A stretch of DNA of 64,000 nt from Eutreptiella sp. 'Long Island Sound 2002' (lineage: Eukaryota; Protista; Euglenida). How positions within the stretch are numbered: the stretch's first letter is position 1; every line of letters starts with the position of its first letter. The stretch spans positions 156,178,001-156,242,000 of the forward strand of contig OZ038378.1 of the NCBI GenBank assembly GCA_964036045.1, read 5' to 3'. Made by a program: the position numbers and the translations under genes. The notes below the pieces were generated by a model. That model was given only the letters and a program-made list of their open reading frames with translations, did no database searches and was not told the DNA's origin. Shown here in pieces: positions 1 to 38,343 of this stretch.

Positions 1-3000
1 ACGGAGGGGTCGACGGGCGTGCCGGGGGCGTACGCAGCGTGCAGGTTGGGCAGCAGCGGGCGCACGTGCAGCGCGTCGGCGTGCTCGATGGGGACCTCAC
101 TGAGGACCGAGGGGTTGGCGGCAAGCAGTATGCGATGCCCGGGAGGGGTGGCGGCGAGGAGCGGGAGGATGTCCGCGGCCCGCGACGTGGGGGTGAACAC
201 GATGTGGGCCGGGTGCGGCCCCGGGAGCGGTGTTGGGGGGGGCGGGACCACAGGACGGCGGTCTGCTGTGAGGCGATGCTGTGGCGCAGTGTGTGGGGCC
301 GGGTGCTGGGCGGCGTGGGGACGTGTGGCGGGAGGGGGGGGGGGGCGGGGCGGTGGCGTGGGAGGGGGCACGGCGAAGGAGTGACGTCAGTGACGTGTGT
401 GTCGTGCTGAGGGTGGGGAGGAGCCCACGGTATCGGGTCCGGGTTCGGCGCCTTTGGGCGTGGTGGTGCTCGTTTTCGTGTGCGTTGGCTTCCTTCGGCG
501 TCCGGTTCGTTTGGTGACTTCTGGGCGGGGCCTGGCGTGGCGCCCCGTGGTGGTGGTGTGCTGGGTAACGGGGTTAGATGGCGGCGCCGCTGGCCGGGGG
601 GTCTGGCGCGTCGTGTTGTGTGGCGCGCAGGGCTCCTGGGGTGCTGTGAATGTCGCCGGTGTCGGTGCGCCGATGCTTGTGGGGTGGTGAGGGGGTGTGT
701 GCGTGCGGGGCTGCGCTTTGGGTGATGTCCCACAGGCGGATGCCGTCTCGCCGCGTTTCCTGGAGGGTCTCCCGTAGGCGCCTGAGGACGTACGGGTGGT
801 CCTGGGGCGCGGGGAGGTTGCGGGGGTGGACTCCCAGGGGGTGGAGCGCATCGGCCAGCATGGCTTCCCATGCGGCCTGCGGCATCCACCCCCCCGCCGG
901 CCGGAGGCGGCCGTTCTCCACCGACCCCTTGCGGGGCCGATGGACCAGGCCCTCGAGGGAGGGCTCTCCCCGGGCCCACTTCCACAGCTCCCAGAGCTGC
1001 GTGTGGGTCCAGCGCTGCCACCACTGTTCCTGGGCGGGCCTGCGGTCGTGGGCGGAGGAGTGGGCGTGGGTGGGTGTGACGGGGTCGTGGGGACCGGCGG
1101 CGGTGGCGGGCCTGGGGGATTCCTCGTAGTCCTGTTCCGTGGGGGTGCGTGGGGAGTGGGGGTGCACGCGGATGTGGACCCGCGGGTGGGCGCGTACGGT
1201 CTCCGCCTCGGGGTTGGGCGGGGATTCGCGGCGGCGGCGGTAGTGGGGCATGCGTTGCATGTGGGCTGTCATCGGGGGCCGGTAGGGGGGCGGGGGCGCT
1301 GCTGGTGGACCCTGGGGTTGTTCTGGCTTGGTCGGGGGCGGTCCGTGGGCCTGGGGTGCGGGCTTTGGGAGGTGGTGGGACGAGGCGCGTCGCGCTTCGG
1401 CCGCGGCGCGCTCCGCCATGAAGGTGGTGGCGGTGGCGTCGGTGACGGTGGGGGGGCGCCGCGCTGGGCGCTGCTGCCTTCGGGCCTGGGACGGCTGGGG
1501 CCGGATGTCGTAGAGGACATCCTCGGGGGGCCGGGCTCGCGTTGCCGTCGTGGCGCCGGGTTTGGGCTTGGGTTTGGGCTTGGCTGCGGGTCGCCGTTTG
1601 GCGGCGGTCTTGGGCTTCGGCTGGGTCGTGGGCGTGGGCTTCGCCGGGGTGTGGGCTTTGGCGGCGGCGGGGCTGCTCGCGGTGGGGGCGGGTTTGGAGG
1701 CCCGTTTGGGAGGTGTCCCCCGCGGCCTGGGGGGTGGAGTGCTGGACGAGGACGTGGTGCTGGTGGTGGATGAGGTGGTCGTGGTGGTGGAGGTTGTGGA
1801 GTCGGAGGCGGAGGAGAAGGCCGCGGGAGACGGCGGAGGGTCCCGGGCCTCGGGGGCGGGCGTATGATGCTGGGTCCTGTAAGTAGCGAGAACGAGGGTG
1901 CAGGTTCGGGCATCGGGCGTGTGCGCGCGTTTTCCCTGGTGATCCGTGCGTGCTGGTGCTGGCGTGGCGGCGTTGTCCCGGCGGCGCGGGCACGTGGGTT
2001 ACCCGGGGGGTGGCCATCTCTGCTCCAGGACGTGGGGGTGTGTTTGCTGGAGGTAGTCGAGGGTCCGGAAGAAGCATCGCTGGATGCCGGGCATGTCCTC
2101 CTCTGTGAGGTGGGGGTAGTTTTGGGTCGGGGTGTGGGGGCCCGGCCATAGCAGCGCCATGAGGCGGGCTGCCACCATGTACGGGCATAGTTGTGGGGTG
2201 GTGGGGCGTGGGGGGGTGGGTCCCTCGCGGTTTCGGGGGGCTTCCCTCTGCTGGGGGCGCAGCGTGACCACCCACACCCATCGGTCCGTGGGGATCCCCC
2301 AGGTCCGTTGGGTCCGCTTGGCGAGGCAATACATTGCCCTACCAAGGCCCTGGCAGCCGCTGCGGATGGAGAGCAGCGTGTCCAGGGATGCGGGTTCCCA
2401 CGTGCCCCAGATGTGGGGGTCGTCCGGGTCGTCCCCCCTGGCGTACGTGTCGGGGCCTGGGTTGTGTGGGGGGGGGGTGTAGTCGGCGGGGAGGAGGGAG
2501 TCGGTGCCGTGTACCACCCAGTGGTCTGTGGGTGCGTCGTAGGTGGTGGTGGAGAGGGTGTAGTGCAGATTGCACATGAGGGTCATGTACGTGGAGGGGG
2601 CTGGCTGCTGCTCGTCGGGGGTGGGGATGTCCCCCGGGACGTGGTGCCGGAAGTTGCTTAGGGAGGCCATCCGGGCTACCCATGTTTCCCGCTCCCACTC
2701 TTTGGTGCTGTCGGGGGTGGCGTCGGGTGGGGGGTGGGCCATGTTGGGCTCGCGGTAGCGGGTGTGGCCCCGGGTGCTGTCCCGCTCCGGCACGGGGTGT
2801 CCGACCAGGTGTCGCCCCCAGTCGATGGGGGGCACCCAGATCCGGCTCCCCGTGGGGGGCGGGCTCTCGCCGTCTGGGGTGGCGCGTGGCGGGCGCTCGT
2901 GTCGGGCGACGTGGAGGAAGGCGTCGAAGAGGAAGTCTCTGACGCCTTCCCCCAGGGTGGCCGCCTGGACCAGGGTGGCCGCCCGGATGGGGGTGCTGGT

Positions 3001-3346
3001 GCCGGAGGTGCGGAGGTACAGCACGACGTCCTGTTCCCCGAGTCCCCGGAGGTGCTGCCGTACCGCTGCGGGGTTGTGTAGGGCGTAGGGTTCGGCCGGT
3101 GCGGCGACTGGTGGTGCGGGGTGTGATGGGGGGGGTGGTGTGGGTTGGGGGGGGTGGTCGTCGTTGTCGCGCGTGAGTCCGGTGATGGGGTCTCTTGTGG
3201 CGGTCGCGGGAGGGGGGATTCGCGGTGGCGTCTGTCGGCGAGGGTACTGACGTCAATTGGCTGGTGCTGGCTGCCGCGTGTTGTGTCCGTGGCCTGGTCT
3301 CGGGGGGGGGGCGGGGGGGGATGGTGCGGGGGTGGCGCTGTTGGTG

Positions 3347-4082
3347 TTGTGGGGGGCGGGGGTGGGTGTTGCGCTGGCTGGGGGTCTGGGCGTCCCTGTG
3401 GGTCGTGTGGGTGTTGCGTGTGTGCGCCGTGTGGCCCTTGCGGTTCTTGACTGGTTTTGGTGCCGGGGTGTAGGTGGGAGGCGGCCGCATGAGCGTCCGG
3501 GTGGGGCTGTGGTCCGTATGTAATGGGTGGCTGCTGGTGGATGGTGCTCGCTGGTATGGGGTGTGGGTGGGGGGGCTGCTGGTGGTGGTGGGGTGGGGGG
3601 GGCGGGGGTGGGTGTTGTGCCGGCTGGGGGTCCGGGCGTCCCTGTGGGTCGTGTGGGTGTTGTGTGTGTGCGCCGTGTGGCCCTTGCGGTTCTTGACTGG
3701 TTGCAGTGCCGGGGTGCGGGTGGGAGGCGACCGCATGAGCCCCCGGGTGGGGCTGTGGTCCGTATGTGATGGGTGGCTGCTGGTGGATGGTGCTCGCTGG
3801 TATGGGGTGTGGGTGGGGGGGCTGCTGGTGGTGGTGGGGTGGGGGGGGCGGGGGTGGGTGTTGTGCCGGCTGGGGGTCCGGGCGTCCCTGTGGGTCGTGT
3901 GGGTGTTGTGTGTGTGCGCCGTGTGGCCCTTGCGGTTCTTGACTGGTTGCGGTGCCGGGGTGCGGGTGGGAGGCGACCGCATGAGCCCCCGGGTGGGGCT
4001 GTGGTCCGTATGTGATGGGTGGCTGCTGGTGGATGGTGCTCGCTGGTATGGGGTGTGGGTGGGGGGGCTGTTGGTGGTGGTG
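3347..4082 (-). repeat. 246-bp in-frame tandem repeat (~3 copies, 82-aa Pro/His/Gln unit)
   Basis: Equivalent positions at 3527, 3773 and 4019 (period 246). The repeated peptide is PQPAQHPPPPPPPHHHQQPPHPHPIPASTIHQQ... Confidence 0.9.
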
Positions 4083-5414
4083 GGGCGCTCCTACTAGGCC
4101 CTGGTGTTGCTGGTGTGCGTGCGCGGCTCCTCGCGGGTCCATGGGGGTGTACCGTGGCTCGTATGTCGTGGGCCCGTGTAGCGGGGGCGGCGGGTGGTGC
4201 TGGACCGCGTGGTGGTGGTGTGGAGGGTGTGCCGGTTGTGTGTGGTACCCCGGCGTTGGTGGGTGTGGTGGCAGGGGCTGGTGGTGGTGGAACACGTGAT
4301 GCTGTGGTGCGGTGATGTGCGCTATGTGGGGTGGGTGGTTCGCGGGGCCTGGTTGTGCTGGGGCGTGGTGGGGATGTAGCTGGTGGGGGTCGCTGTAGCT
4401 TGGGGGCATTAGGGGGTAGGGGCTGGGAGGGACGGGGGCGCGGTGGTGGTGTTGGTGGTGCCATGTCCCCTGGCTCTGCGCGTACGGTGGTCCTGGCATG
4501 GTGTGGACGTGTGTGGGCGGTGGTGGCTGACTGGGCTGCAGGGTTTGGGTGCTGCGGTACGGTGGTGGTGGTGGGCGTTGGTGGTGGTGGTGTTGTTGGT
4601 GTGCCCCGGGGGTCTGCGCGTGGGGCGGTGCGGTGTAGCTGGACCCGGGCCTTGGTCGGGGCGTCGCGCCCTGCTGGCGGGCGCGTTGGCGCGCCCCCTG
4701 GTGCCGGTGCCCCTTGGTCTTCTTGGCCTGGTGGGTGTCGGGGGCGGGTGAACCCCCCTGTCCCTGTGGGGGCGACGGGGAGCGGGCGCGCCAGCGGTGT
4801 GCCTCTTGGAGGCTCGTCTTGAGGCCTCTGACGTAGCCCTCCTGGTCCGTGAGGCCCATCCGCGTGGCGGTGGCCTCGTCGGGGGCGGCCAGGTGGGCGT
4901 CCCGAAAAGACGCCCAGCCCTCCGGGGGCGTCTGTTGTGCGGGGTGGGGGTGGTGTGCCGGGTAGAGGAGTGCGCTGAGGGGGTAGGGTGTTCCCTTCCG
5001 TCGGCCGAGGGCGTTTGCGAACCGGCGGCACGTGGTTCGGAGGTAGGCTGCTATCTCCTCTGGTGCCGTGTCGGCCCACGCTTCCGGCGTCAGGGCTGCT
5101 GCTTGGGGGGCCGGGGGTTGTGGGTGTGGGAGGTGTAGGTCTCGTTGGTGGAGGTATAGGGCGAGGAGGATGTGGCGGGCCGCCACGTTCAAGCCGCCTC
5201 CGCTGTGGCGTAGGGGTGGGCTGTGGGGGGGCAGGGGTGTGTTGCCCGCGGCCACGGTTATGGCCCATGCGTGGTCCGCCGCGTCCGCCACGTAGTACCC
5301 TCCCAGTTGGTCCCGGAGAGTGTCGGTGAGGTACCCGAAAAAGCTGGGGTGGCTGGCGGGGGGGGGTGCGGCTGGGGCTGCGGGCCGTTCGCGGTGGCGG
5401 GGGTTGAGGTCCCC

Positions 5415-5522
5415 GCAGTGGGGGCAGTGGGTGAGGCGGTGCGCGGCTCCCAGGCAGACCCAGTGGTCTGGGTTGCAGGGCAGGGCTGTCTGTGGTAGCC
5501 GCTGGCGAACGCAGAGGGGACA
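5415..5522 (-). other. RING-finger-like Zn motif (degenerate)
   Basis: Manual translation upstream of and in frame with ORF 2676-5291 gives CPLCVRQRLPQTALPCNPDHWVCLGAAHRLTHCPHC = C-x2-C-x11-C-x3-H-x2-C-x2-A-x6-C-x2-C. The sixth ligand is A rather than C. Confidence 0.5.
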
Positions 5523-5992
5523 TGCGGTGGCTGGTGGTTGGTGGTACCTGTGGACGGACGGCGGCGTGGGGGGATGGGGGCTGGTGGCGCGCGCATGCTG
5601 GTGGGAGCGTGTGCGGTGCCTGTGGCGCCCGTGTGTGCTGTGCCAGTGCTGTGCTCGGTGGACGGTGTGTAGACGTGGTGGGGGTTCGGTGTTGGTACGT
5701 CACGGGGTAGGTTCTCATGGTTGGTAGAACAGGAGTTTGAGGAGGGGGGATTGGTCTGTTGGGGGCAGGGTCGCCGCATGCTGCAGGTATTTGTGGGTGC
5801 GGTATGTGAGCTGCTCCGCCGTCTTGGCAACGGCCGTCCGCTGCATGTGCGCCGCCGTGGCCTGGGGGTCATCCGCGTGGGTGCGTAGTAAGGTGTAGAC
5901 GGCAGTGGGGACGAGTCCCCTCCGGACTGCCTCGAGCACCTCCGTCTGCTTGAGGACGGTGGTGAGTTGCTGGGTCGCCGGGGACTGCGCCA

Positions 5993-7630
5993 GCCATTTC
6001 CTATTGAGCGCAATTCTGCTTGGCCCAGAAACATGACATTTCCCATTGGGCGCATTTTGCGTCGCCGGGAAAAATGCCATGTCCTATTGCGCGCAAATCT
6101 GCTTGGCCCAGAAACATGCCATATCCTATTGTGCACTATTCTGCTTGGCCAAGAAACATGCCATTTCCTATTGTGCGAATTTTGCTTGGCCCCGAAACAT
6201 GCCATGTGCTATTGGGCGCAATTTTGCTTGGCCCAAAAACGTGCCATTTTCTCTTCTGGGCAATTGTGCGTGGCCCAAAAACATGCTATTTCCTATTTTG
6301 CACAATTCTGCTTGGCCCCAAAAAAATGCCATTTTCTTTTCTGCGCAAGTCTGCTTTGCCCAAAAGCATGCCTTTTTTTTTTCTGCGCAATGCTTCTTGG
6401 CCAACAAACATACCATTTTTTATTGTGCGCAATTGTGCTTGGCCCAGAAATATGCCATTTCTTATTGTGCGAATTCTGCTTGGCCCAGAAACATGCCATG
6501 TCCTATTGTGCGCCAATCTGCTTGGCCCAGAAACATGCCATGTCTTATGGTGCACCATTTTGCTTGGTCGACAAACATGCCATGTCCTATTGTGCACAAT
6601 TCTGCTTGGCCCAAAAACATGCCATTTGCCTATCGTGCGCAAGTCTGCTTGGCCCGGAAACATGCCATTTCCTCTTGTGCGAATTCTGCTGGGCCCAGAA
6701 ACATGCCATTTCCTATTGTGCGCAATTCCGCTTGGCCCGGAAACATGCTATTTCCTATTGTACACTATTCTGCTTGGCCCGGCAGCATGCCATTTCTTAT
6801 TGTGCACAATTGTGCTTGGCCCAGAAACATGCCATGTCCTATTGTGCGCAAATCCGCCTGGCCGAGAAAAATGCCATGTCTTATTGTGCGCAAATCTTCT
6901 TGGCCCAGAAACATGCCATGTCCTATTGTGCGCAAATCCGCTTGGCGCGGAAACATGCCACATCCTATTGTGAATTCACCTTGGCCCGAAACTTGCCATT
7001 TCCTATTGAGCGCAATTCTGCTTGGCCCAGAAACATGCCATTTCCTATTGGGCGCATTTTGCGTTGCCGGGAAAAATGCCATGTCCTATTGCGCGCAAAT
7101 CTGCTTGGCTCAGAAACATGCCATATCCTATTGTGCACTATTCTGCTTGGCCAAGAAACATGCCATTTCCTATTGTACTCTATTCTGCTTGGCCCAGAAC
7201 AATGCCATGTCCTATTGTGCGAATTTTGCTTGGCCCAGAAACATGCCATGTGCTATTGGGCGCAATTTTGCCTGGCCCAAGAACGTGCCATTTTCTCTTG
7301 TGGGCAATTGTGCGTGGCCCAGAAACATGCTATTTCCTATTTTGCACAATTCTGCTTGGCCCCAAAAAATGCCATTTTCTTTTCTGCGCAAGTCTGCTTT
7401 GCCCAAAAACATGCCTTTTTTTTTTCTGCGCAATGCTTCTTGGCCAACAAACATACCATTTTTTATTGTGCGCAATTGTGCTTGGCCCAGAAATATGCCA
7501 TTTCTTATTGTGCGGAATTCTGCTTCGCCCGGAAACATGGCATTTCCCATTCTGCGCAATTCTGCTTGGCCCATAAATATGCCATTTCCTACTGTACATT
7601 CTGCTTGGCCCAGAAACATGCCATTTTCTT
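5993..7630. repeat. 42-bp minisatellite (~39 units) with ~1002-bp higher-order duplication
   Basis: Consensus ATTGTGCGCAATTCTGCTTGGCCCAGAAACATGCCATTTCCT; cctattg recurs at 6712 and 6754. The variant block starting ~5996 recurs at ~6998. Confidence 0.95.
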
Positions 7631-28945: not shown

Positions 28946-30651
28946 GTTGAAACCAACAGACGAGGCGAGGGATAAGGCAAAGCAAGGGACTCGTTCTGAA
29001 AATTCATTTGCAAACAACTATTCTGAGTGCCAAGACCAAACCGGCTGTAAGATTGTTGAAATGAAGCAGGCCCTCTTCAGCATTTGGCTATTTGAAACAT
29101 CAATATTGCAGAATACAAATGGCCTAAAAGTCAGTAAAAGAACACAAACTAAAGCAGGATGCAAATGAAAAAACAAATTGCTATTCTACAGCATTGAGTA
29201 TGTGTTTGGCCAGTTGTTTGTTTTTGAATGCATTCTAGACTCACGCACTAGAACGTGCACAAATTAACATGTTGTCCTGCACTTTGGCTTACCAACCTCT
29301 TTGTATCCCATGATGTTCTATCTGCTATGAAGCGCGTGCATAGTGTATGTCTAGCATGACCCATGTGGTGCCTCCTACTTTGTGGGCGCATTGTGCCTAC
29401 GCCATGGAAGAGGTTAACGTATTCCCCTTTGTCAATAATTCCCCCTCTTCAAAGTGATTGCAAACAAAAATTGCTCACTAATTGTCCACAGTCCCCTCTA
29501 TTGCCCCACTTACCATTGTGCCCCATGGGGCACTTGCATGGCATGTATGGCCCTCTGCCGTTCTACTCTACTTGACTTGCCTTGACTTGACTTCTTGTCG
29601 GTATGTAGTGGGATAGCAGTAGCCTTCAGGTAATAGTTAACGACCAGCAAAAAAACACACACTACTACAAAGGGTGAATGTAGCCTGATGAGTGCAGGCA
29701 TGTTTGCACTAGGCAGAGTGTGGCCCAGCAAACTTCTGTCAATTGCTTAACACACTGCATTTGCCAAACTTGTGCAAAGCAGGTGCTAGCGCCTTAGATA
29801 TTGTTGCAAGGTTGCAAACCATGTGCACTGCTGCAGGGGTGTGCTCCTCTGGTCCAATGCACAAGCATCCTGGCTGGTCCGGTAAAGAACCTCCGGGTTT
29901 TCTAACATTGGATACCATAATTAACCCCCCACCCCCCGGCGCATTTGGGATCACCCTCAAAACTTCACTGCCTGGAAATGACTCGGTGCGAAATCTGTTG
30001 GTGCTGGCAAAGAAGCTGATGACACGGGTGAAAAATGTAAGTCGTGTACAAAAAAGCCGTATAGTCGTGTAATTTTTTTTTTTTGCTGTAAATGCGTGTA
30101 ATTTTTTTTTTTTGCTGTAAGTCGTGTGAATTATAAAAAAAAATTGAATTTTTTTTTTTTGCTGTAAGTCGTGTAATTTTTTTTTTTTTGCTGTAAGTCG
30201 TGTAAATTATAAAAAAAATTGAAAAATTGAAAGAAATCCAACCTTTGCAATACATGCGCAATATGTACAGCTGCCGGTTCCGTACGGCACCCCATAGCGA
30301 CCTTAACGATGGGACGCCGAGTCCACAAAGCACATAGTACTCCGCGTGGCCACCAATTAGTTGGGACTCGGCCAATATAACATAGTTTCACATGTTGTCA
30401 TTGGCACTAGACTCAAAATCAGGCCCAAGAGAAGATTCCTGACAGGGCCATGGCCAACATCCAGTGTGCCTGCACTGGGAACAAAATCAGGCTCAAGAAA
30501 AAGAGTCCCGACAGGGCCATGGCCAACGCTACTGCCACCATTATAGGCCACCAAGGCACTGGCATGGGGCCAATATTATAGCAATCTTATACGCTCCACC
30601 ATTGGTACACCAAACGGCGGAGGAAAATACAACCCACAAAACATGCACCCG

Positions 30652-31700
30652 CTACAAGTAGTTGCAGAATGCACGCTTGTAGATCAAGTCCGTTTTTGTG
30701 TCACCGGACTTGGGCTTTGCACCAGGATTGGCGTTAAGCTGACAAGCGGCGCGCAACTCTGGAACTATCTGCTTGCACAGGCCATCAATGAAAAGCTGGT
30801 CACGCTCCAGCTGGCCAGATGCATCTGCTGGGTAGCCATCCGGCACCTTGCGCCACTCTCCACGGATGAGGACCTTGGGACGGGTGTCCTCCTCCTCGGT
30901 GGGAGTGTCCACGGAAGGTTGCGGCCTGGCCTCCGGGCTTTCCACGCTCTGCTCGGCGGAGGCCTCCTTGCCTTCGAGTGGGGTGGGGGTGGCCTGAACA
31001 CTGTCCTCCTTAGCCGAAAGTGCACCTTCAACTTGGGTGCTGGGGGGGGACTCAGGAGGGCCAGCAAGCTCGATCACGCCCTCCACATCATCACCGGGCG
31101 CTTGAGCGACCCGCACAGCACGATCAGCGTTAACAATGTTGAGCACGTAGTCCACAAAACCGGCACCCATTGGGACAAGGGGCACATTGGAAAAAGTACC
31201 CCGGTGCTCCACCACCTGCTTTGCGATGTTCAAGCTTTGAAAACCACAAGACCAACCGTCCGTTTGGAATCCCAAGGCGCGGTGCTTGGTGGTTCGCGAA
31301 AGCTTCTTCAAGGCCGACAAGAAAGGACGGATCAAATGAGTGGAGCTTAGGGGTTCCCAAACCCAAATAGTGAAAAGCTCCAACCGGACACGACAATCGA
31401 AGGCACACACAAACCAGTGCAACCCTTCCTTGTCATTGGAATTAACCACAAAAATGTGGCGGCGGCACCACCTCATGTTGGTCATTCTTTCGCCGGATTC
31501 AACTCTCTGCATGTACTTGGAGAGTCTCTTGATATATATAACCGCAAGAGTCCACGCACGTGGTTCATCGATTTCATTGTGGCAGACCTCTTGGTTCAAC
31601 CAACACAGGATATCCTTGTCGGTCAACCAATCTCCCACCCCCAAAGGGGTTGTTTCGCTCGGAATGGTGCTCCGAGTACGCCTTTGGGGATTGGGAGGGT
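30652..31700 (-). CDS. Ulp1/SENP (C48)-like cysteine protease with C-terminal SAP-like motif; N-terminus replaced by the 85-bp array
   Basis: WLTDKDI; IFVVN...GLHWF (His); WVWEPL (acidic position); FQTDGWSCG (Gln, Cys). The C-terminal LCKQIVPELRAAC...GDTKTDLIYK resembles SAP/HeH. Confidence 0.75.
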
Positions 31701-31708
31701 CGATAGGG

Positions 31709-32780
31709 GGAGCGGGGGGCAGAATCAGAATTGGCCCACAAGTGGGCAAATTGGCTACCTCACCCCTGCCGTATCGGGGAGCCCCACCGCTGCAGAGCGG
31801 GGGGCAGAATCAGAAGTGGCCCACAAGTGGGCAAATTGGCTACCTCACCCCTGCCGTATCGGGGAGCCCCACCGCTGCAGAGCGGGGGGCAGAATCAGAA
31901 GTGGCCCACAAGTGGGCAAATTGGCTACCTCACCCCTGCCGTATCGGGGAGCCCCACCGCTGCAGAGCGGGGGGCAGAATCAGAAGTGGCCCACAAGTGG
32001 GCAAATTGGCTACCTCACCCCTGCCGTATCGGGGAGCCCCACCGCTGCAGAGCGGGGGGCAGAATCAGAAGTGGCCCACAAGTGGGCAAATTGGCTACCT
32101 CACCCCTGCCGTATCGGGGAGCCCCACCGCTGCAGAGCGGGGGGTAGAATCAGAAGTGGCCCACAAGTGGGCAAATTGGCTACCTCACCCCTGCCGTATC
32201 GGGGAGCCCCACCGCTGCAGAGCGGGGGGCAGAATCAGAAGTGGCCCACAAGTGGGCAAATTGGCTACCTCAGCCCTGCCGTATCGGGGAGCCCCACCGC
32301 TGCAGAGCGGGGGGCAGAATCAGAAGTGGCCCACAAGTGGGCAAATTGGCTACCTCACCCCTGCCGTATCGGGGAGCCCCACCGCTGCAGAGCGGGGGGC
32401 AGAATCAGAAGTGGCCCACAAGTGGGCAAATTGGCTACCTCACCCCTGCCGTATCGGGGAGCCCCACCGCTGCAGAGCGGGGGGCAGAATCAGAAGTGGC
32501 CCACAAGTGGGCAAATTGGCTACCTCACCCCTGCCGTATCGGGGAGCCCCACCGCTGCAGAGCGGGGGGCAGAATCAGAAGTGGCCCACAAGTGGGCAAA
32601 TTGGCTACCTCACCCCTGCCGTATCGGGGAGCCCCACCGCTGCAGAGCGGGGGGCAAAATCAGAATTGGCCCACAAGTGGGCAAATTGGCTACCTCACCC
32701 CTGCCGTATCGGGGAGCCCCACCGCTGCAGAGCGGGGGGCATAATCAGAAGTGGCCCACAAGTGGGCAAATTGGCTACAT
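31709..32780. repeat. 85-bp tandem array (~12.6 highly homogeneous copies)
   Basis: Unit GAGCGGGGGGCAGAATCAGAAGTGGCCCACAAGTGGGCAAATTGGCTACCTCACCCCTGCCGTATCGGGGAGCCCCACCGCTGCA with few substitutions. Confidence 0.97.
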
Positions 32781-33044
32781 AACCCCTGACGCTTTTTTTT
32801 GCTTTTTTTTTCTGCTGTAAATGCGTGTAACAAAAAACCGTCAGGTGGTGTAATTTTTTTTTTTTGCTGTAAGTCGTGTAATTTTTTTTTTTTTGCTGTA
32901 AGTCGTGTAATTTTTTTTTTTTCGCTGTAAATGCGTGTAACAAAAAAACCGTCAGGTCGTGTAATTTTTTTTTTTTCGCTGTAAGTCGTGTAATTTTTTT
33001 TTTTTCGCTGTAAATGCGTGTAACAAAAAAACCGTCAGGTGGTG

Positions 33045-33115
33045 TAATTTTTTTTTTTTGCTGTAAGTCGTGTAAGCCGGCTTACACGACTTACAGCGAA
33101 AAAAAAAAATTACAC
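33045..33115. repeat. Hairpin at the junction of forward and inverted terminal arrays
   Basis: Perfect palindrome gctgtaagtcgtgtaagcc|ggcttacacgacttacagc at 33060-33097, extended by T and A tracts. Confidence 0.9.
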
Positions 33116-34159
33116 GACTATACGGTTTTTTTGTTACGCGCATTTACAGCGAAAAAAAAAAATTACACGAATTACAACATACACATGACACGGAGGCAAT
33201 GATGCTGCAATTGTGAGTAGCCACTCTGACCCACAAAACGACAGCGCCCCCCTACCACACCAGTGCCCTCCTCAAAAGAGAAGGTCACGCAGAAGACACT
33301 AGAAACCAGATGTACTACACAGCCTATATCAGCCTTCATGGACCACTCCACACACAGGAGTTGAAACAAAAAGGGACGGCGGTGTACGGGGGCAGTTAAG
33401 GAGGTTTCATGTACCACTGGGGGATGGTGGGCTTCATTGGCCCCCCAGACATGCACCGTTTGTGATGTATTGGGGTATTGATGTCCGTTGCGGCCTAAGA
33501 ACAAAAACACCGACACGTTGTGCTTTTAGCAATAACTATGCGCATGGCGAGCCAAGCCGCTCGCAGCACTGCTTTCCTTTGCCGCTTAGAGCAAGCTCTG
33601 TGAAAAAAGGGGGTGTACGGCCAACCTTGCCGGCGCATACCAGAAAAGTTTGTTGGAGTAATTGGAAAAGGCAACAGCTAAAGCAGGCGGCGCGGACGTC
33701 GGGACCCTAGGGGTGCTTGTCAACACAATGGTTGCATAACGAGCTGGGCCGCCGCTAGCGTATGCTGAGCGTGAGTGCAAATGGCCTTGGTGACCGTCCT
33801 AGGCCCACGTCAGATGAGTTGGAGAATGAACGTGGCCTGAGTGAAACAATGTTTCAATGGTTGCGGCACTTTTTCAGTGCCTACGCTGGGAAAGAGAAAC
33901 ACACCGCCAACAACGCAAACAACGACAAACGACAAAGTACAGCGAAGCCCCTAATGGACCTCGCAAGCAACCTCATTTTGATGCAGATCCTTTACCGCAG
34001 GAAGTCTTCATAGTGCCAGCGCAGTTTCTCGGCGCGTGGCCTGTGAATTGCACTATACGAAACGCATAGCAAGCGCAAATAGCACACGGCGAAGACATCT
34101 GACAATTTGCTTTCCCGCATTGACATCGGGCTGCTAAAACAAAAGCGGACATGAACCCA

Positions 34160-34572
34160 TGCCGAAAATGGGTTTTTTTCATCTCGTGAGCCCGGCAGGG
34201 CACTTCAAGTACACACCCCCCCTAATTTGAGGGTGCTGAATTCAATTATCAGCCTAATTCTCATCAACCAAGCGCTGGGACATCCCAAAATGCGTTTTTC
34301 AGGGTGCAGACCGACAGAATTTCCGTTTATCCAACCCTCCCCCCCAAACGGTGCCGAAAATGGGTTTTTTCATCTCGTGAGCCCGGCAGGGCACTTCAAG
34401 TACCGACCCCCCCTAATTTGAGGGTGCTGAATTCAATTATCAGCCTATTTCTCATCAACCAAGCACTGGGACATCCCAAAATGCGTTTTTCAGGGTCCAA
34501 ACCGACAGAATTTCCGTATATCCAACCCTCCAACCCCAAACGGTGCCGAAAATGGGTTTTTCACCTCGTGAC
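34160..34572. repeat. 192-bp tandem repeat (~2.1 copies)
   Basis: TGCCGAAAATGGGTTTTT at 34160, 34352 and 34544. Confidence 0.92.
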
Positions 34573-35315: not shown

Positions 35316-37196
35316 TTCACAACCGGTTCAGTCTGAGACTCTGGTTGGATACCACACCGCCCTGAGGCTGCATATGATACACTTGTACGCAGTCACTCAC
35401 ATACAACCTGAAGTCCTGCGGGCACTTTTACCTGGGTGCTCTGTGGTCTGAATGCTGGATGAAGTGAACTGAAGTTCGCGATGTGTGGGCTTAGGTGAGG
35501 GCGAGTGGGAGGAGTATGGTGTTAGAGAGGAGCGTGGGAGAGAGAATGGCGGGGGAGAAGTAAGTTATATGGCTGGGTGTGGGCCTTGGATTGTTGATAT
35601 GGGGGGGCGGGGGGGGGCTGGCTCTGATGGAAAGTTTTGAATGCGGAAAAGGGGTCGGGTTTTGGCTTTTTCTTTTTGGGGAGAGGCCTATGGAATGCTT
35701 TTCGTTTTTGGTGCGAGCTGGTTGGTGGTGGTGTGCAACTGGTGTGGGAAAGGTTTGGAATGGACCGCTGTAGGCCCCACGTGGTGGACACGGAGGAGAT
35801 TTCTGATGCACAGGCAATCTGTCGTTGCTGGTTCTCCCGGCTGCAAGGAGAACCGTGAATGTTTGCGTCACATGTGCGTTTGCATTGTTTGATGTGACTT
35901 GTGATGATTAATTCTTAGATTTCTGCAAACTCTCCTGTTCTTAGCTTCATTGCCATAATATTAAATGAACATGAACTCCAAGGATCAATGCCGGATCCAG
36001 AGCCACCGCCGTAGCGTTTAAAACGATCCCGTTGGTGTATCGTGTAGCGTAGGGTTGCGATGGTTGGAGAGTGCACATTTCACTCATACGCCCATGTCAC
36101 ACCGCGAACCATGTTTTTTGACTTTGGAGCGCAAAAACAACATTCCAAGAGCAAAATTTGCCTGATTCTCCTTAGTGTGGGTGAGAGCCGATGGCCAAAG
36201 GGCCCCTGCACCGAGACGCCCGTGAAGGGGAATCGGCACGTGGGTGCCGAGCCTGGACTGGGCGGTCGCGAGTGGACGATGCCCAAGTGCACCTATGAGA
36301 ACCGAGTGGGTACTCTGCCCGTGAGGGTGGGGAGTGGGCCTCGCAAAGGTGGGATTGTCTTGCCGGTGCACCGACACAAGGCCCCGCCTGAAGGGGGCCT
36401 ATCAAACCGCACGGCCAGGTGATGGGGGGGCTGATTAGGCGTCTGTAGGAGCCCGGGGGAACCCAGGTGGTTGCTTGTGAAGGGGACCTTACACCTGGGG
36501 GAACCTATGGCGGAGAAGGAACCCCCCACCGTTGAGTGGCCGCCAAACAAAAAGGGTGACAGCAGGAGGCCACCACTCCGTGCCCGAAAAGAAGTCAAGT
36601 CAAGTCAAGTCTCCTTTGTGTTTCTTTTTAAAAACAAAGAATAATACATTAGGTTTTTTTGACTCTGGAGTGCAAAATCTGCCTTGGAAGTGAGACCCTT
36701 GACTTTCAAGTGCCATGACTTTCGGCACTCTTACAATCTTAGTATTGACTAATAATGATAAATTGGTTTCCTAGCTTTTAACAGAGAACTTCCCGATATT
36801 GACGTTTTTGCAAGTGAAAACTGCCCAGCAGCATAAGGACAGGCTTCAAAACCAGCTGCAAAAGCCAAACTGCGACAGCCAGTTGCCCGGAAGTTGAACG
36901 TGGACAATCGAGGAGGCCGAATCCAAACAATGGGGATGTTGACATTGCTCATTGAACTTGCACCTTGCACACTCTGCATGTGAAATGAAAAACCCTTTTC
37001 ATTCAAATGTTCATGCCAACGAGAACACCATGAACTACATTGTTGGGACAAGAGAACAACAATTGAACTGACAAATGAAGCAGTGAACTTGTGTTGCAGT
37101 GATGACACCCAGATGAACAGCAGGCAATCCGCAAAATTGGATATGGCTAGTATGCTGCACACAGGTTTGGGTTCACCGCATGTAGTGGGATACTTA

Positions 37197-37900
37197 ACTT
37201 GACGTGACTTGACTTCTTGTCGGTATGTAGAGGGATAGCAGTAGCCTTCAGGTAATAGCTAACGACCAGCAAAAAAACACACACTACTACAAAGGGTGAA
37301 TGTAGCCTGATGAGTGCAGGCATGTTTGCACTAGGCAGAGTGTGGCCCAGCAAACTTCTGTCAATTGCTTAACACACTGCATTTGCCAAACTTGTGCAAA
37401 GCAGGTGCTAGCGCGTTAGATATTGTTGCAAGGTTGCAAACCATGTGCACTGCTGCAGGGGTGTGCTCCTCTGGTCCAATGCACAAGCATCCTGGCTGGT
37501 CCGGTAAAGAACCTCCGGGTTTTCTAACATTGGATACCATAATTAACCCCCCACCCCCCGGCGCACTTGAAATCACCCTCAAAACTTCAGTGCCTGGAAA
37601 TGACTCGGTGCGAAATCTGTTGGTGCTGGCAAAGAAGCTGATGCCACGGGGGCAATGATGCTGCAATTGTGAGTAGCCGCTCTGACCGACAAAACCACAG
37701 CACCCCCCTACCACACCAGTGCCCTCCTCAAAAAAGAAGGCCACGCAGAAGACACTAGAAACCAGATGTACTACACAGCCTATATCAGCCTTCATGGACC
37801 ACCCCACACACACGAGTTGAAACAAAAAGGGACGGCGGTGTACGGGGGCGGCATAGAACGTGCCCCCAGACATGCACCGTTTGTGACGTATCGGGGAAGT
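37197..37900 (-). repeat. Dispersed repeat with (GACTT)n terminus, copy 2 (empty site)
   Basis: Contains a single ATGCCACGG at 37641-37649 where copy 1 has the duplicated ATGACACGG. Confidence 0.85.
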
Positions 37901-38343
37901 TGATATGATTTTTGGACTTTGGACCATGACTGACATATGCACAACTCCTTGTGTGACTCACTGTGGAAGGACAAATCTTGGGCCTTGGTTGCCACACCCT
38001 AACACTGCGCAGGGAGGGAGGCAGGGGCATGGGGGGCACCAAGGCGGAGTAGATTTTGCTGCTCAGTACTTTTGTGGTGAGTGGTGTGTGTGTCCCGCTG
38101 CTCACATTTGGAGCTGATAGGGGTAGTGTGCTCGTACCAATACCTTGTGAAGCATCACCCCTTGCCCCGGCTGAGGTTTTGTGCGAGCTTGAGCAACACC
38201 TTTGCTACCCATCAGCCCCCCCCCCCCCCCCCTCTCTCCCCTCCCCACTCCCTATCCCTCCCTCTCAGAGGCGGCCCTCAAATGTCGGAAAGCATGAGCA
38301 GCTTGGCGGAGCCCCCTCCCCTTGGACAATGGGCTGTCGGGGG

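Follow-up and report, generated by a model that had tools for sequence, protein, structure and literature searches.

The 64,000-nucleotide stretch of the genome of Eutreptiella sp. 'Long Island Sound 2002' analyzed here (contig OZ038378.1, positions 156,178,001 to 156,242,000; hereafter the window) contains an element of 3157 bp (30028-33184) that is very probably a young, non-autonomous, internally deleted copy of an 8.8-kb Mutator-like (MULE) transposon of the cut-and-paste type. When the 2.28-Gb assembly was searched, longer elements with the same termini, which the original prediction from the sequence of the window had proposed as the route to the transposase, were found as 8,846-bp copies encoding a transposase of 1365 residues. 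The full-length copy used for comparison (G000:C4:14813943-14822788; 8,846 bp) is flanked at both ends by the 9-bp duplication ACCAGCACA and contains one open reading frame (ORF) of 1365 amino acids, the C-terminus of which matches the ORF of the window element. The latter consists of the last 352 residues of the 1365-residue protein, preceded by codons 1-13, which are read from satellite sequence. Approximately 4.4 kb, including the first 1013 codons and the DDE transposase core, is absent from the window copy, in agreement with the earlier remarks that no transposase is visible and that the element is non-autonomous.

Internal Deletion and Age of the Copies

Ten short copies (2.3-3.2 kb) were compared with the full-length copy by BLAST. 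Both ends are kept in each of them, and the coding region is joined to the satellite or to the right subterminal repeats at a breakpoint that differs from copy to copy (full-length positions 1665-2125 in BLAST coordinates), with alignments that overlap by a few nucleotides at the junction or leave a short filler (0-12 nt). Because each short copy has a different breakpoint, the deletions are independent and do not represent one amplified lineage. Independent internal deletions are the usual product of interrupted gap repair after cut-and-paste excision, as in Ac/Ds, P and Mu, and, judged by analogy with these systems, the junction pattern of the short copies is that of abortive gap repair. In the window copy, a deletion joined codon 1014 to the element's own 85-bp satellite, leaving a remnant that encodes the protease and tail, both ends and the satellite. 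The window copy would then move only when a full-length element supplies transposase in trans; the transposase would bind the lineage-specific 29-bp subterminal repeats, cut at the GTG...CAC ends and insert the element with a staggered cut of 9 bp, or sometimes 8 bp.

A working protease is probably not produced from the remnant ORF, since there is no ATG before codon 80, which already lies inside the protease fold, and since the region upstream has been lost. The protease that the element had been said to have retained is thus present as a region, but as the 3′ remnant of a transposase-protease fusion with a TTG start in the satellite. Alternatively, the short elements might constitute a selected, protease-carrying non-autonomous family, in which the truncated ORF is expressed as a stand-alone protease of ubiquitin-like modifiers that aids transposition or counters host silencing. 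Many short copies indeed keep the whole protease region without stops, and a first look at the genome gave 6711 candidates for the protease part, compared with 1366 for the transposase core. However, the protease served as the query in finding the copies, which biases the sample, and its location 0.6 kb from the left end is by itself enough for internal deletions to keep it. The copies are, moreover, too young for the absence of stops to indicate selection, and 18 of the 40 best matches to the left end do not appear among the protease matches that were scored, the scoring being incomplete. Taken with the individual breakpoints and with the start of the window ORF described above, these points make a selected family of this kind unlikely, and independent deletion of a longer transposon remains the preferred explanation of the short copies.

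Searched with the window ORF, the genome yielded at least 112 scored matches of the 6711 first-look candidates, many of them 95-99% identical. All 11 complete copies are flanked by target-site duplications of 8-9 bp, which are perfect 9-bp repeats in eight copies and 8-bp repeats in three, and which all differ in sequence. The 9-bp duplication originally predicted therefore recurs in the family, and a lack of consistent duplications in other copies, which had been named as a ground for abandoning the prediction, was not found. In a copy of the sister lineage B (L047), AACCCCTATG or ACCCCTATG is present on both sides, corresponding to a duplication of 9-10 bp. Twenty-eight copies differ from their consensus by 0-0.9%, and a 426-bp segment is identical in at least 11 copies; a fully intact 1365-residue frame was seen only once. 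Judged from these sequence comparisons, the element was recently inserted and the family looks active now. Three copies (L028, L029 and L030, at 8.06, 8.10 and 9.27 Mb of G000:C23) are identical in element sequence and left flanks, and appear to have arisen by segmental duplication of a region containing the element rather than by separate insertions.

Insertion Site and Element Ends

The boundaries of the element are fixed exactly by the target-site duplication together with a paralogous site that is uninterrupted (Table 1). The first base of the element is 30028 (GTGAAAAATG..., or, read further, GTGAAAAATGTAAG...) and the last is 33184 (...ACATACAC, or ...AATTACAACATACAC). These are the bases at which the original prediction had placed the element, and the duplicated ATGACACGG on both sides and the GTG...CAC termini at 30028 and 33184 were likewise borne out. 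The offset to the repeated flank is 7622 on the left and 4456 on the right, and the difference of 3166 is accounted for by the 3157-bp element together with the 9-bp duplication. The sequence at the uninterrupted site, ATGCCACGG, differs from ATGACACGG by one mismatch in the 9-mer. Because the flank is repeated approximately 7.6 kb downstream with 95-98% identity, this site, described earlier as a single-copy empty site, is uninterrupted as claimed but is a paralogue and not an allele. The uninterrupted copy of the flank indicates that the element was inserted into one copy of an older repeat. The two copies of this host repeat of approximately 1 kb, which are 95-98% identical, occupy ~29363-30027 plus 33185-33520, with the element inside, and ~36985-37960.

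The inverted ends of the element span approximately 105-125 bp of shuffled short modules built from 29-bp units. The motif GCTGTAAGTCGTGTAA occurs nine times in the window, always within the element, with none expected by chance. At the right end there is an 84-nt palindrome (arms 32995-33078 and 33079-33162) that has no counterpart at the left end; a search of the element against Rfam gave sub-threshold hairpin matches at this palindrome only and none for the satellite. The earlier description of the element as "foldback-type" thus fits loosely, in that inverted ends and one palindrome are present, but the foldback class itself was rejected: the ends do not make up most of the element, and the long internal array is a direct satellite of 85-bp units.

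Table 1. Features of the element and its insertion site in the window.
Feature	Position	Strand	Basis or remark
Left copy of target-site duplication, ATGACACGG	30019..30027		sequence read and copy comparison
Left end: GTG terminus, imperfect modular terminal inverted repeat, about five 29-bp subterminal repeats (TCGTGTAA-T12-GCTGTAA)	30028..30225	+	repeat analysis
Unique segment 3′ of the ORF stop (3′ untranslated part of the transposase gene)	30226..30651	-	100% identical in at least 11 genomic copies
365-codon open frame, TTG start, first ATG at codon 80	30652..31749	-	codons 14-365 equal residues 1014-1365 of the 1365-residue protein
Conserved C-terminal tail, ~85 residues (RP.V.I...DLI.KR.F), including the "SAP-like" stretch	30655..30909	-	family alignment
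Predicted clan CE (Ulp1-like) cysteine protease domain	31129..31635	-	model and alignment
Internal deletion junction, coding sequence (full-length position ~1654) to 85-bp satellite	31710..31711		comparison with full-length copy
85-bp satellite, 12.7 units	31710..32788	+	29.7 units in a full-length copy
Right 29-bp subterminal repeats and terminal inverted repeat ending ...CAC	32789..33184	+	repeat analysis
Right copy of target-site duplication, ATGACACGG	33185..33193		sequence read and copy comparison
Paralogous uninterrupted ("empty") site, ATGCCACGG	37641..37649		second copy of host repeat

Elsewhere in the window, a 191-bp unit is present in two tandem copies that are 90% identical (34166-34547), and positions 1-6000 are unlike the remaining window in composition (GC 0.70-0.73, GC skew +0.34 to +0.37, AT skew -0.40 to -0.48).

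The Transposase

The N-terminal region of the 1365-residue protein is followed by a MULE DDE core, then by a degenerate SWIM-like CxC...C motif and a zinc finger with eight ligands, and finally by a predicted clan CE protease and an 85-residue tail. By its relationships in sequence, the transposase is Mutator-like. An exhaustive search gave 556 relatives of the protein, mostly fragments; one relative, P0081, is 33% identical over residues 372-615 (BLASTP, 5e-38) and scores 29.8 bits on PF10551 (MULE), for which the cut-off is 27.6 bits. Further lineages in the genome have long intact ORFs that are 31-48% identical to the 1365-residue protein, and eight of the nine diverged in-genome lineages match PF10551 (E = 5e-6 to 0.05) in the homologous place and as their best match, with nothing else recurring. 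The metagenomic relatives P0001, P0262 and P0265 (40% identity) give weak matches to PF10551, PF00872 (Transposase_mut) and IS256, and the neighbours of residues 230-800 in the ESM Atlas are MULE/SWIM clusters at 0.96.

In the family alignment A5, D439, D507, C529xxH532 and E621 (in ...PSEP.....LK) are invariant or nearly so. C755, C757 and C766 are invariant, and Gly768 stands where the SWIM motif (CxCxnCxH) has His; the SWIM profile PF04434 has no match in the 1365-residue protein, and the ESM Atlas neighbours carry SWIM. The ligands of the eight-ligand finger in A5 are H880, C891, C894, C902, C905, C908, C911 and C917, and this region weakly resembles a DC1-type finger (1v5n, E = 0.016). 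In lineages B and C (L041-L048, A5 columns ~1547-1590), a second Cys-rich motif, CFFCD..C.EC...C..H, follows the protease; it is not present in lineages A and A′.

The features that define Mutator elements, namely terminal inverted repeats of approximately 100 bp or more, target-site duplications of 8-11 bp (typically 9 bp) and a DDE core homologous to PF10551, are found here as imperfect modular repeats of ~105-125 bp, duplications mainly of 9 bp, and a core linked to PF10551 through P0081 and the sister lineages. The MULE membership that had been suggested is therefore upheld. The original prediction had also considered a relationship to KDZ/Zisupton, because Zisupton combines 8-bp duplications with Ulp1 and SAP domains. 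The element shares terminal inverted repeats and an Ulp1-type domain with that group, and 3 of the 11 complete copies have 8-bp duplications. However, no KDZ transposase signature was detected by Pfam in the 1365-residue protein (E <= 1), in the nine sister lineages (E <= 0.1) or in the metagenomic relatives, whereas PF10551 matches recur and exceed the threshold in P0081; the main duplication length is 9 bp, and no SAP domain was detected. Membership of KDZ/Zisupton is thus extremely improbable and was rejected in favor of a Mutator-like assignment.

The Predicted C-Terminal Protease Domain and Tail

The C-terminal domain is, according to its predicted structure, a clan CE (Ulp1-like) cysteine protease. 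An AlphaFold2 model of residues 1025-1245 built on a 14-sequence alignment reached a predicted local distance difference test score (pLDDT) of 79.5 and a predicted template modelling score of 0.75; a model of the last 361 residues from a single sequence was too poor to use (pLDDT 40.8). A Foldseek search with the protease model gave 61 PDB matches at E <= 1e-3, and among the matches listed all are clan CE or related cysteine protease/acetyltransferase folds: OtDUB (4.6e-6), CidB, SseL, XopD, NopD, adenain, SENP1/2/7, DEN1, Ulp1 (1euv, 5.5e-4), the YopJ/AvrA type and RavZ. Alignment of the model with VIA-align over 150-180 residues gave Z scores from 13.9 (OtDUB, 179 residues, root-mean-square deviation 3.5) down to 9.5 (Ulp1). 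The original prediction had recognized His, Glu, Gln and Cys in Ulp1 order; these residues are His111 (31417-31419), Glu132 (31354-31356), Gln162 (31264-31266) and Cys168 (31246-31248) in the window ORF, or H1111, E1132, Q1162 and C1168 in the 1365-residue protein, and they are conserved and fit the clan CE model. In the model, a strand begins at His1111, the following strand terminates at Glu1132 and the central helix begins with Cys1168, an arrangement that is canonical for clan CE enzymes. Wherever a lineage retains the domain, its His, acidic, Gln and Cys residues are conserved, the acidic residue being Glu in lineages A and A′ but Asp in lineages B and C. Adenain and YopJ are known examples of enzymes with a His-Glu-Cys triad. 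The sole link to C48 at the level of sequence is the alignment of the family profile with XopD (E = 0.03), in which HW, D and Q..SC fall onto HW, D and Q..SCG, which we take to be the catalytic residues of XopD.

Since the domain is kept with intact catalytic residues in every lineage, the protease may well be needed by the element. In the full-length protein, it would most likely remove ubiquitin-like modifiers from the transposase or from chromatin or repair factors, or cleave the fusion itself. The metagenomic relative P0060 spans the end of the zinc finger and the protease, and the fusion thus also occurs outside this genome.

A further alternative is that a MULE has recently captured a host ULP/SENP gene, in the manner of Pack-MULE or KI-MULE, in which case the protease would not be an integral domain of the transposase. 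ULP-like sequences have been described in plant MULEs (PMC2836005, citing Hoen 2006 and van Leeuwen 2007). However, the domain is in frame with the transposase within one intron-free ORF and at the same position in lineages that are 31-48% identical, it is also in frame in P0060, and it is too diverged from C48 to be detected by Pfam. Recent capture is therefore very unlikely and was rejected; the protease is better regarded as an integral part of the transposase.

Several results weigh against the assignments made above. No relevant Pfam match was obtained with the 1365-residue protein and its three parts, and neither the whole protein nor the window ORF matches any Pfam family at E <= 1. PF02902 (Peptidase C48), for which the original prediction had proposed a HMMER search, is matched at E <= 1 neither by the window ORF nor by 14 relatives nor by the nine lineages. 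Because there is no direct Pfam match, the MULE and C48 assignments rest on transitive homology, sub-threshold matches and predicted structure. The best structural matches are, in addition, bacterial deubiquitinase-type CE enzymes and not Ulp1 or SENP. Finally, the ratio of nonsynonymous to synonymous polymorphism is 0.5-0.6, from 63 variants among 28 copies, a variation too low to measure selection. The 1365-residue protein likewise has no match in NCBIfam or among PDB sequences, and a search of PDB sequences gave no protease match with either the single protein or a 14-sequence protease profile. The original prediction was to be given up if neither a C48 match nor a structural match appeared; a clan CE structural match was found despite the absence of a C48 match.

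The last ~85 residues of the protein are conserved in all lineages that reach the C-terminus (alignment A7, 24 invariant columns). Because this tail is conserved across lineages, it is considered to be a real domain. The SAP-like motif noted earlier in this region was not confirmed: the SAP profile PF02037 has no match at E <= 10 in the parts of the 1365-residue protein and none in the nine lineages, and neither phmmer with the tail sequence nor the A7 tail profile retrieved a SAP protein from PDB sequences. A SAP domain was rejected on these results.

The Shared Satellite and 5′ Region

In all of the lineages examined, the stretch from the ORF start to the right end contains the 85-bp satellite, whose orientation with respect to the ORF does not vary (L034, 7402-9929; L040, 235-2100; L041, 1-1327; L045, 6512-10000; L047, 6499-6888; for the window copy, see Table 1). 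Its consensus is identical among four lineages at 81-85 of 85 positions (95-100%), and the proteins of these lineages are 31-48% identical. Two satellite variants do not track the protein lineages, and lineage C has both. The ends of the elements are lineage-specific, with GCTGTAAGTCGTGTAA-T12 in A and repeats of the ACTGAGTAAAA type in B. Upstream of the ORF start, lineage A shares 88-91% DNA identity with both B and C over ~0.65 kb, and another 0.26 kb is 86% identical between A and B (L034 6062-6718 and 7122-7380, compared with L041 and L043); coding DNA of A cannot be aligned at all with that of B or C. The abundance of the satellite was counted by an exact 29-mer pattern from the unit, which occurs 64,327 times in the genome, in dispersed arrays, with no occurrence of the reversed control.

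From these sequence identities, the 5′ module would be either strongly constrained, or exchanged or homogenized among elements. A tentative explanation, less likely than not, is that the satellite and ~1.3 kb of adjoining 5′ sequence form a shared functional cassette that is kept or exchanged among lineages with different ends. Such a cassette could serve as a promoter or leader, as a transposition enhancer, or as an array of binding sites for a conserved protein domain. If this explanation is correct, the cassette would be a cis-acting module common to a whole transposon family, a feature that was not found described for Mutator elements in the literature searched.

Comparison with Known Systems

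Compared with clan CE proteases (MEROPS C48 Ulp1/SENP/XopD; C5 adenain; OtDUB, SseL and CidB), the C-terminal domain has in common the predicted fold (Z = 9.5-13.9), a His-Glu/Asp-Cys triad, a Gln six residues before the Cys, and the position of the Cys at the N-terminus of a helix. It differs in its low sequence identity (~10-14%) and in the lack of a PF02902 match, and the structures closest to it are of the deubiquitinase type and not SUMO-specific.

A ubiquitin-like-modifier protease is also fused to the C-terminus of the DDE transposase of Ginger1 (PMC2836005). The present protein resembles Ginger1 and other transposases fused to proteases of ubiquitin-like modifiers (Ulp1, OTU and USP) in carrying such a protease at the C-terminus of a DDE transposase, but the superfamily differs, being MULE here and integrase-like in Ginger.

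Close parallels are provided by Mutator-like transposases with a C-terminal Ulp1 (and PHD) domain, which have been reported in Repbase for Hydra and lancelet, and by the ULP-carrying plant MULEs VANDAL20, KI-MULE and CUMULE (PMC2836005). Because Ulp1-bearing Mutator transposases have been reported for Hydra, lancelet and plants, the present element is regarded as a divergent case of this known kind. These elements share with it a MULE DDE core, 9-bp duplications, terminal inverted repeats of ~100 bp or more, a Cys-rich finger followed by a C-terminal Ulp1-like clan CE protease, and non-autonomous deletion derivatives. The present element differs from them in its euglenid host, in that neither domain of this lineage is detected by Pfam, in the acidic residue Glu (Asp in sister lineages), in the extra conserved tail of 85 residues, and in the internal 85-bp satellite of all lineages. 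The published assembly of E. gracilis (PMC11252322) comes without a description of this transposon family.

The combination of MULE and Ulp1 is therefore already known, and what is new is a very divergent case in a euglenid host. A large unclassified repeat family of a euglenid, with at least 64,000 perfect satellite cores and at least 5.5 Mb, can accordingly be described as Mutator-like, although its transposase and Ulp1-like domains have diverged beyond the reach of standard profiles. As the family is apparently active, with many identical copies and one intact ORF of 1365 residues, it might be developed into a tagging tool for an organism in which few genetic tools exist. Ubiquitin-like proteases have been fused to transposases repeatedly, and the element represents a further, distant example of such a fusion.

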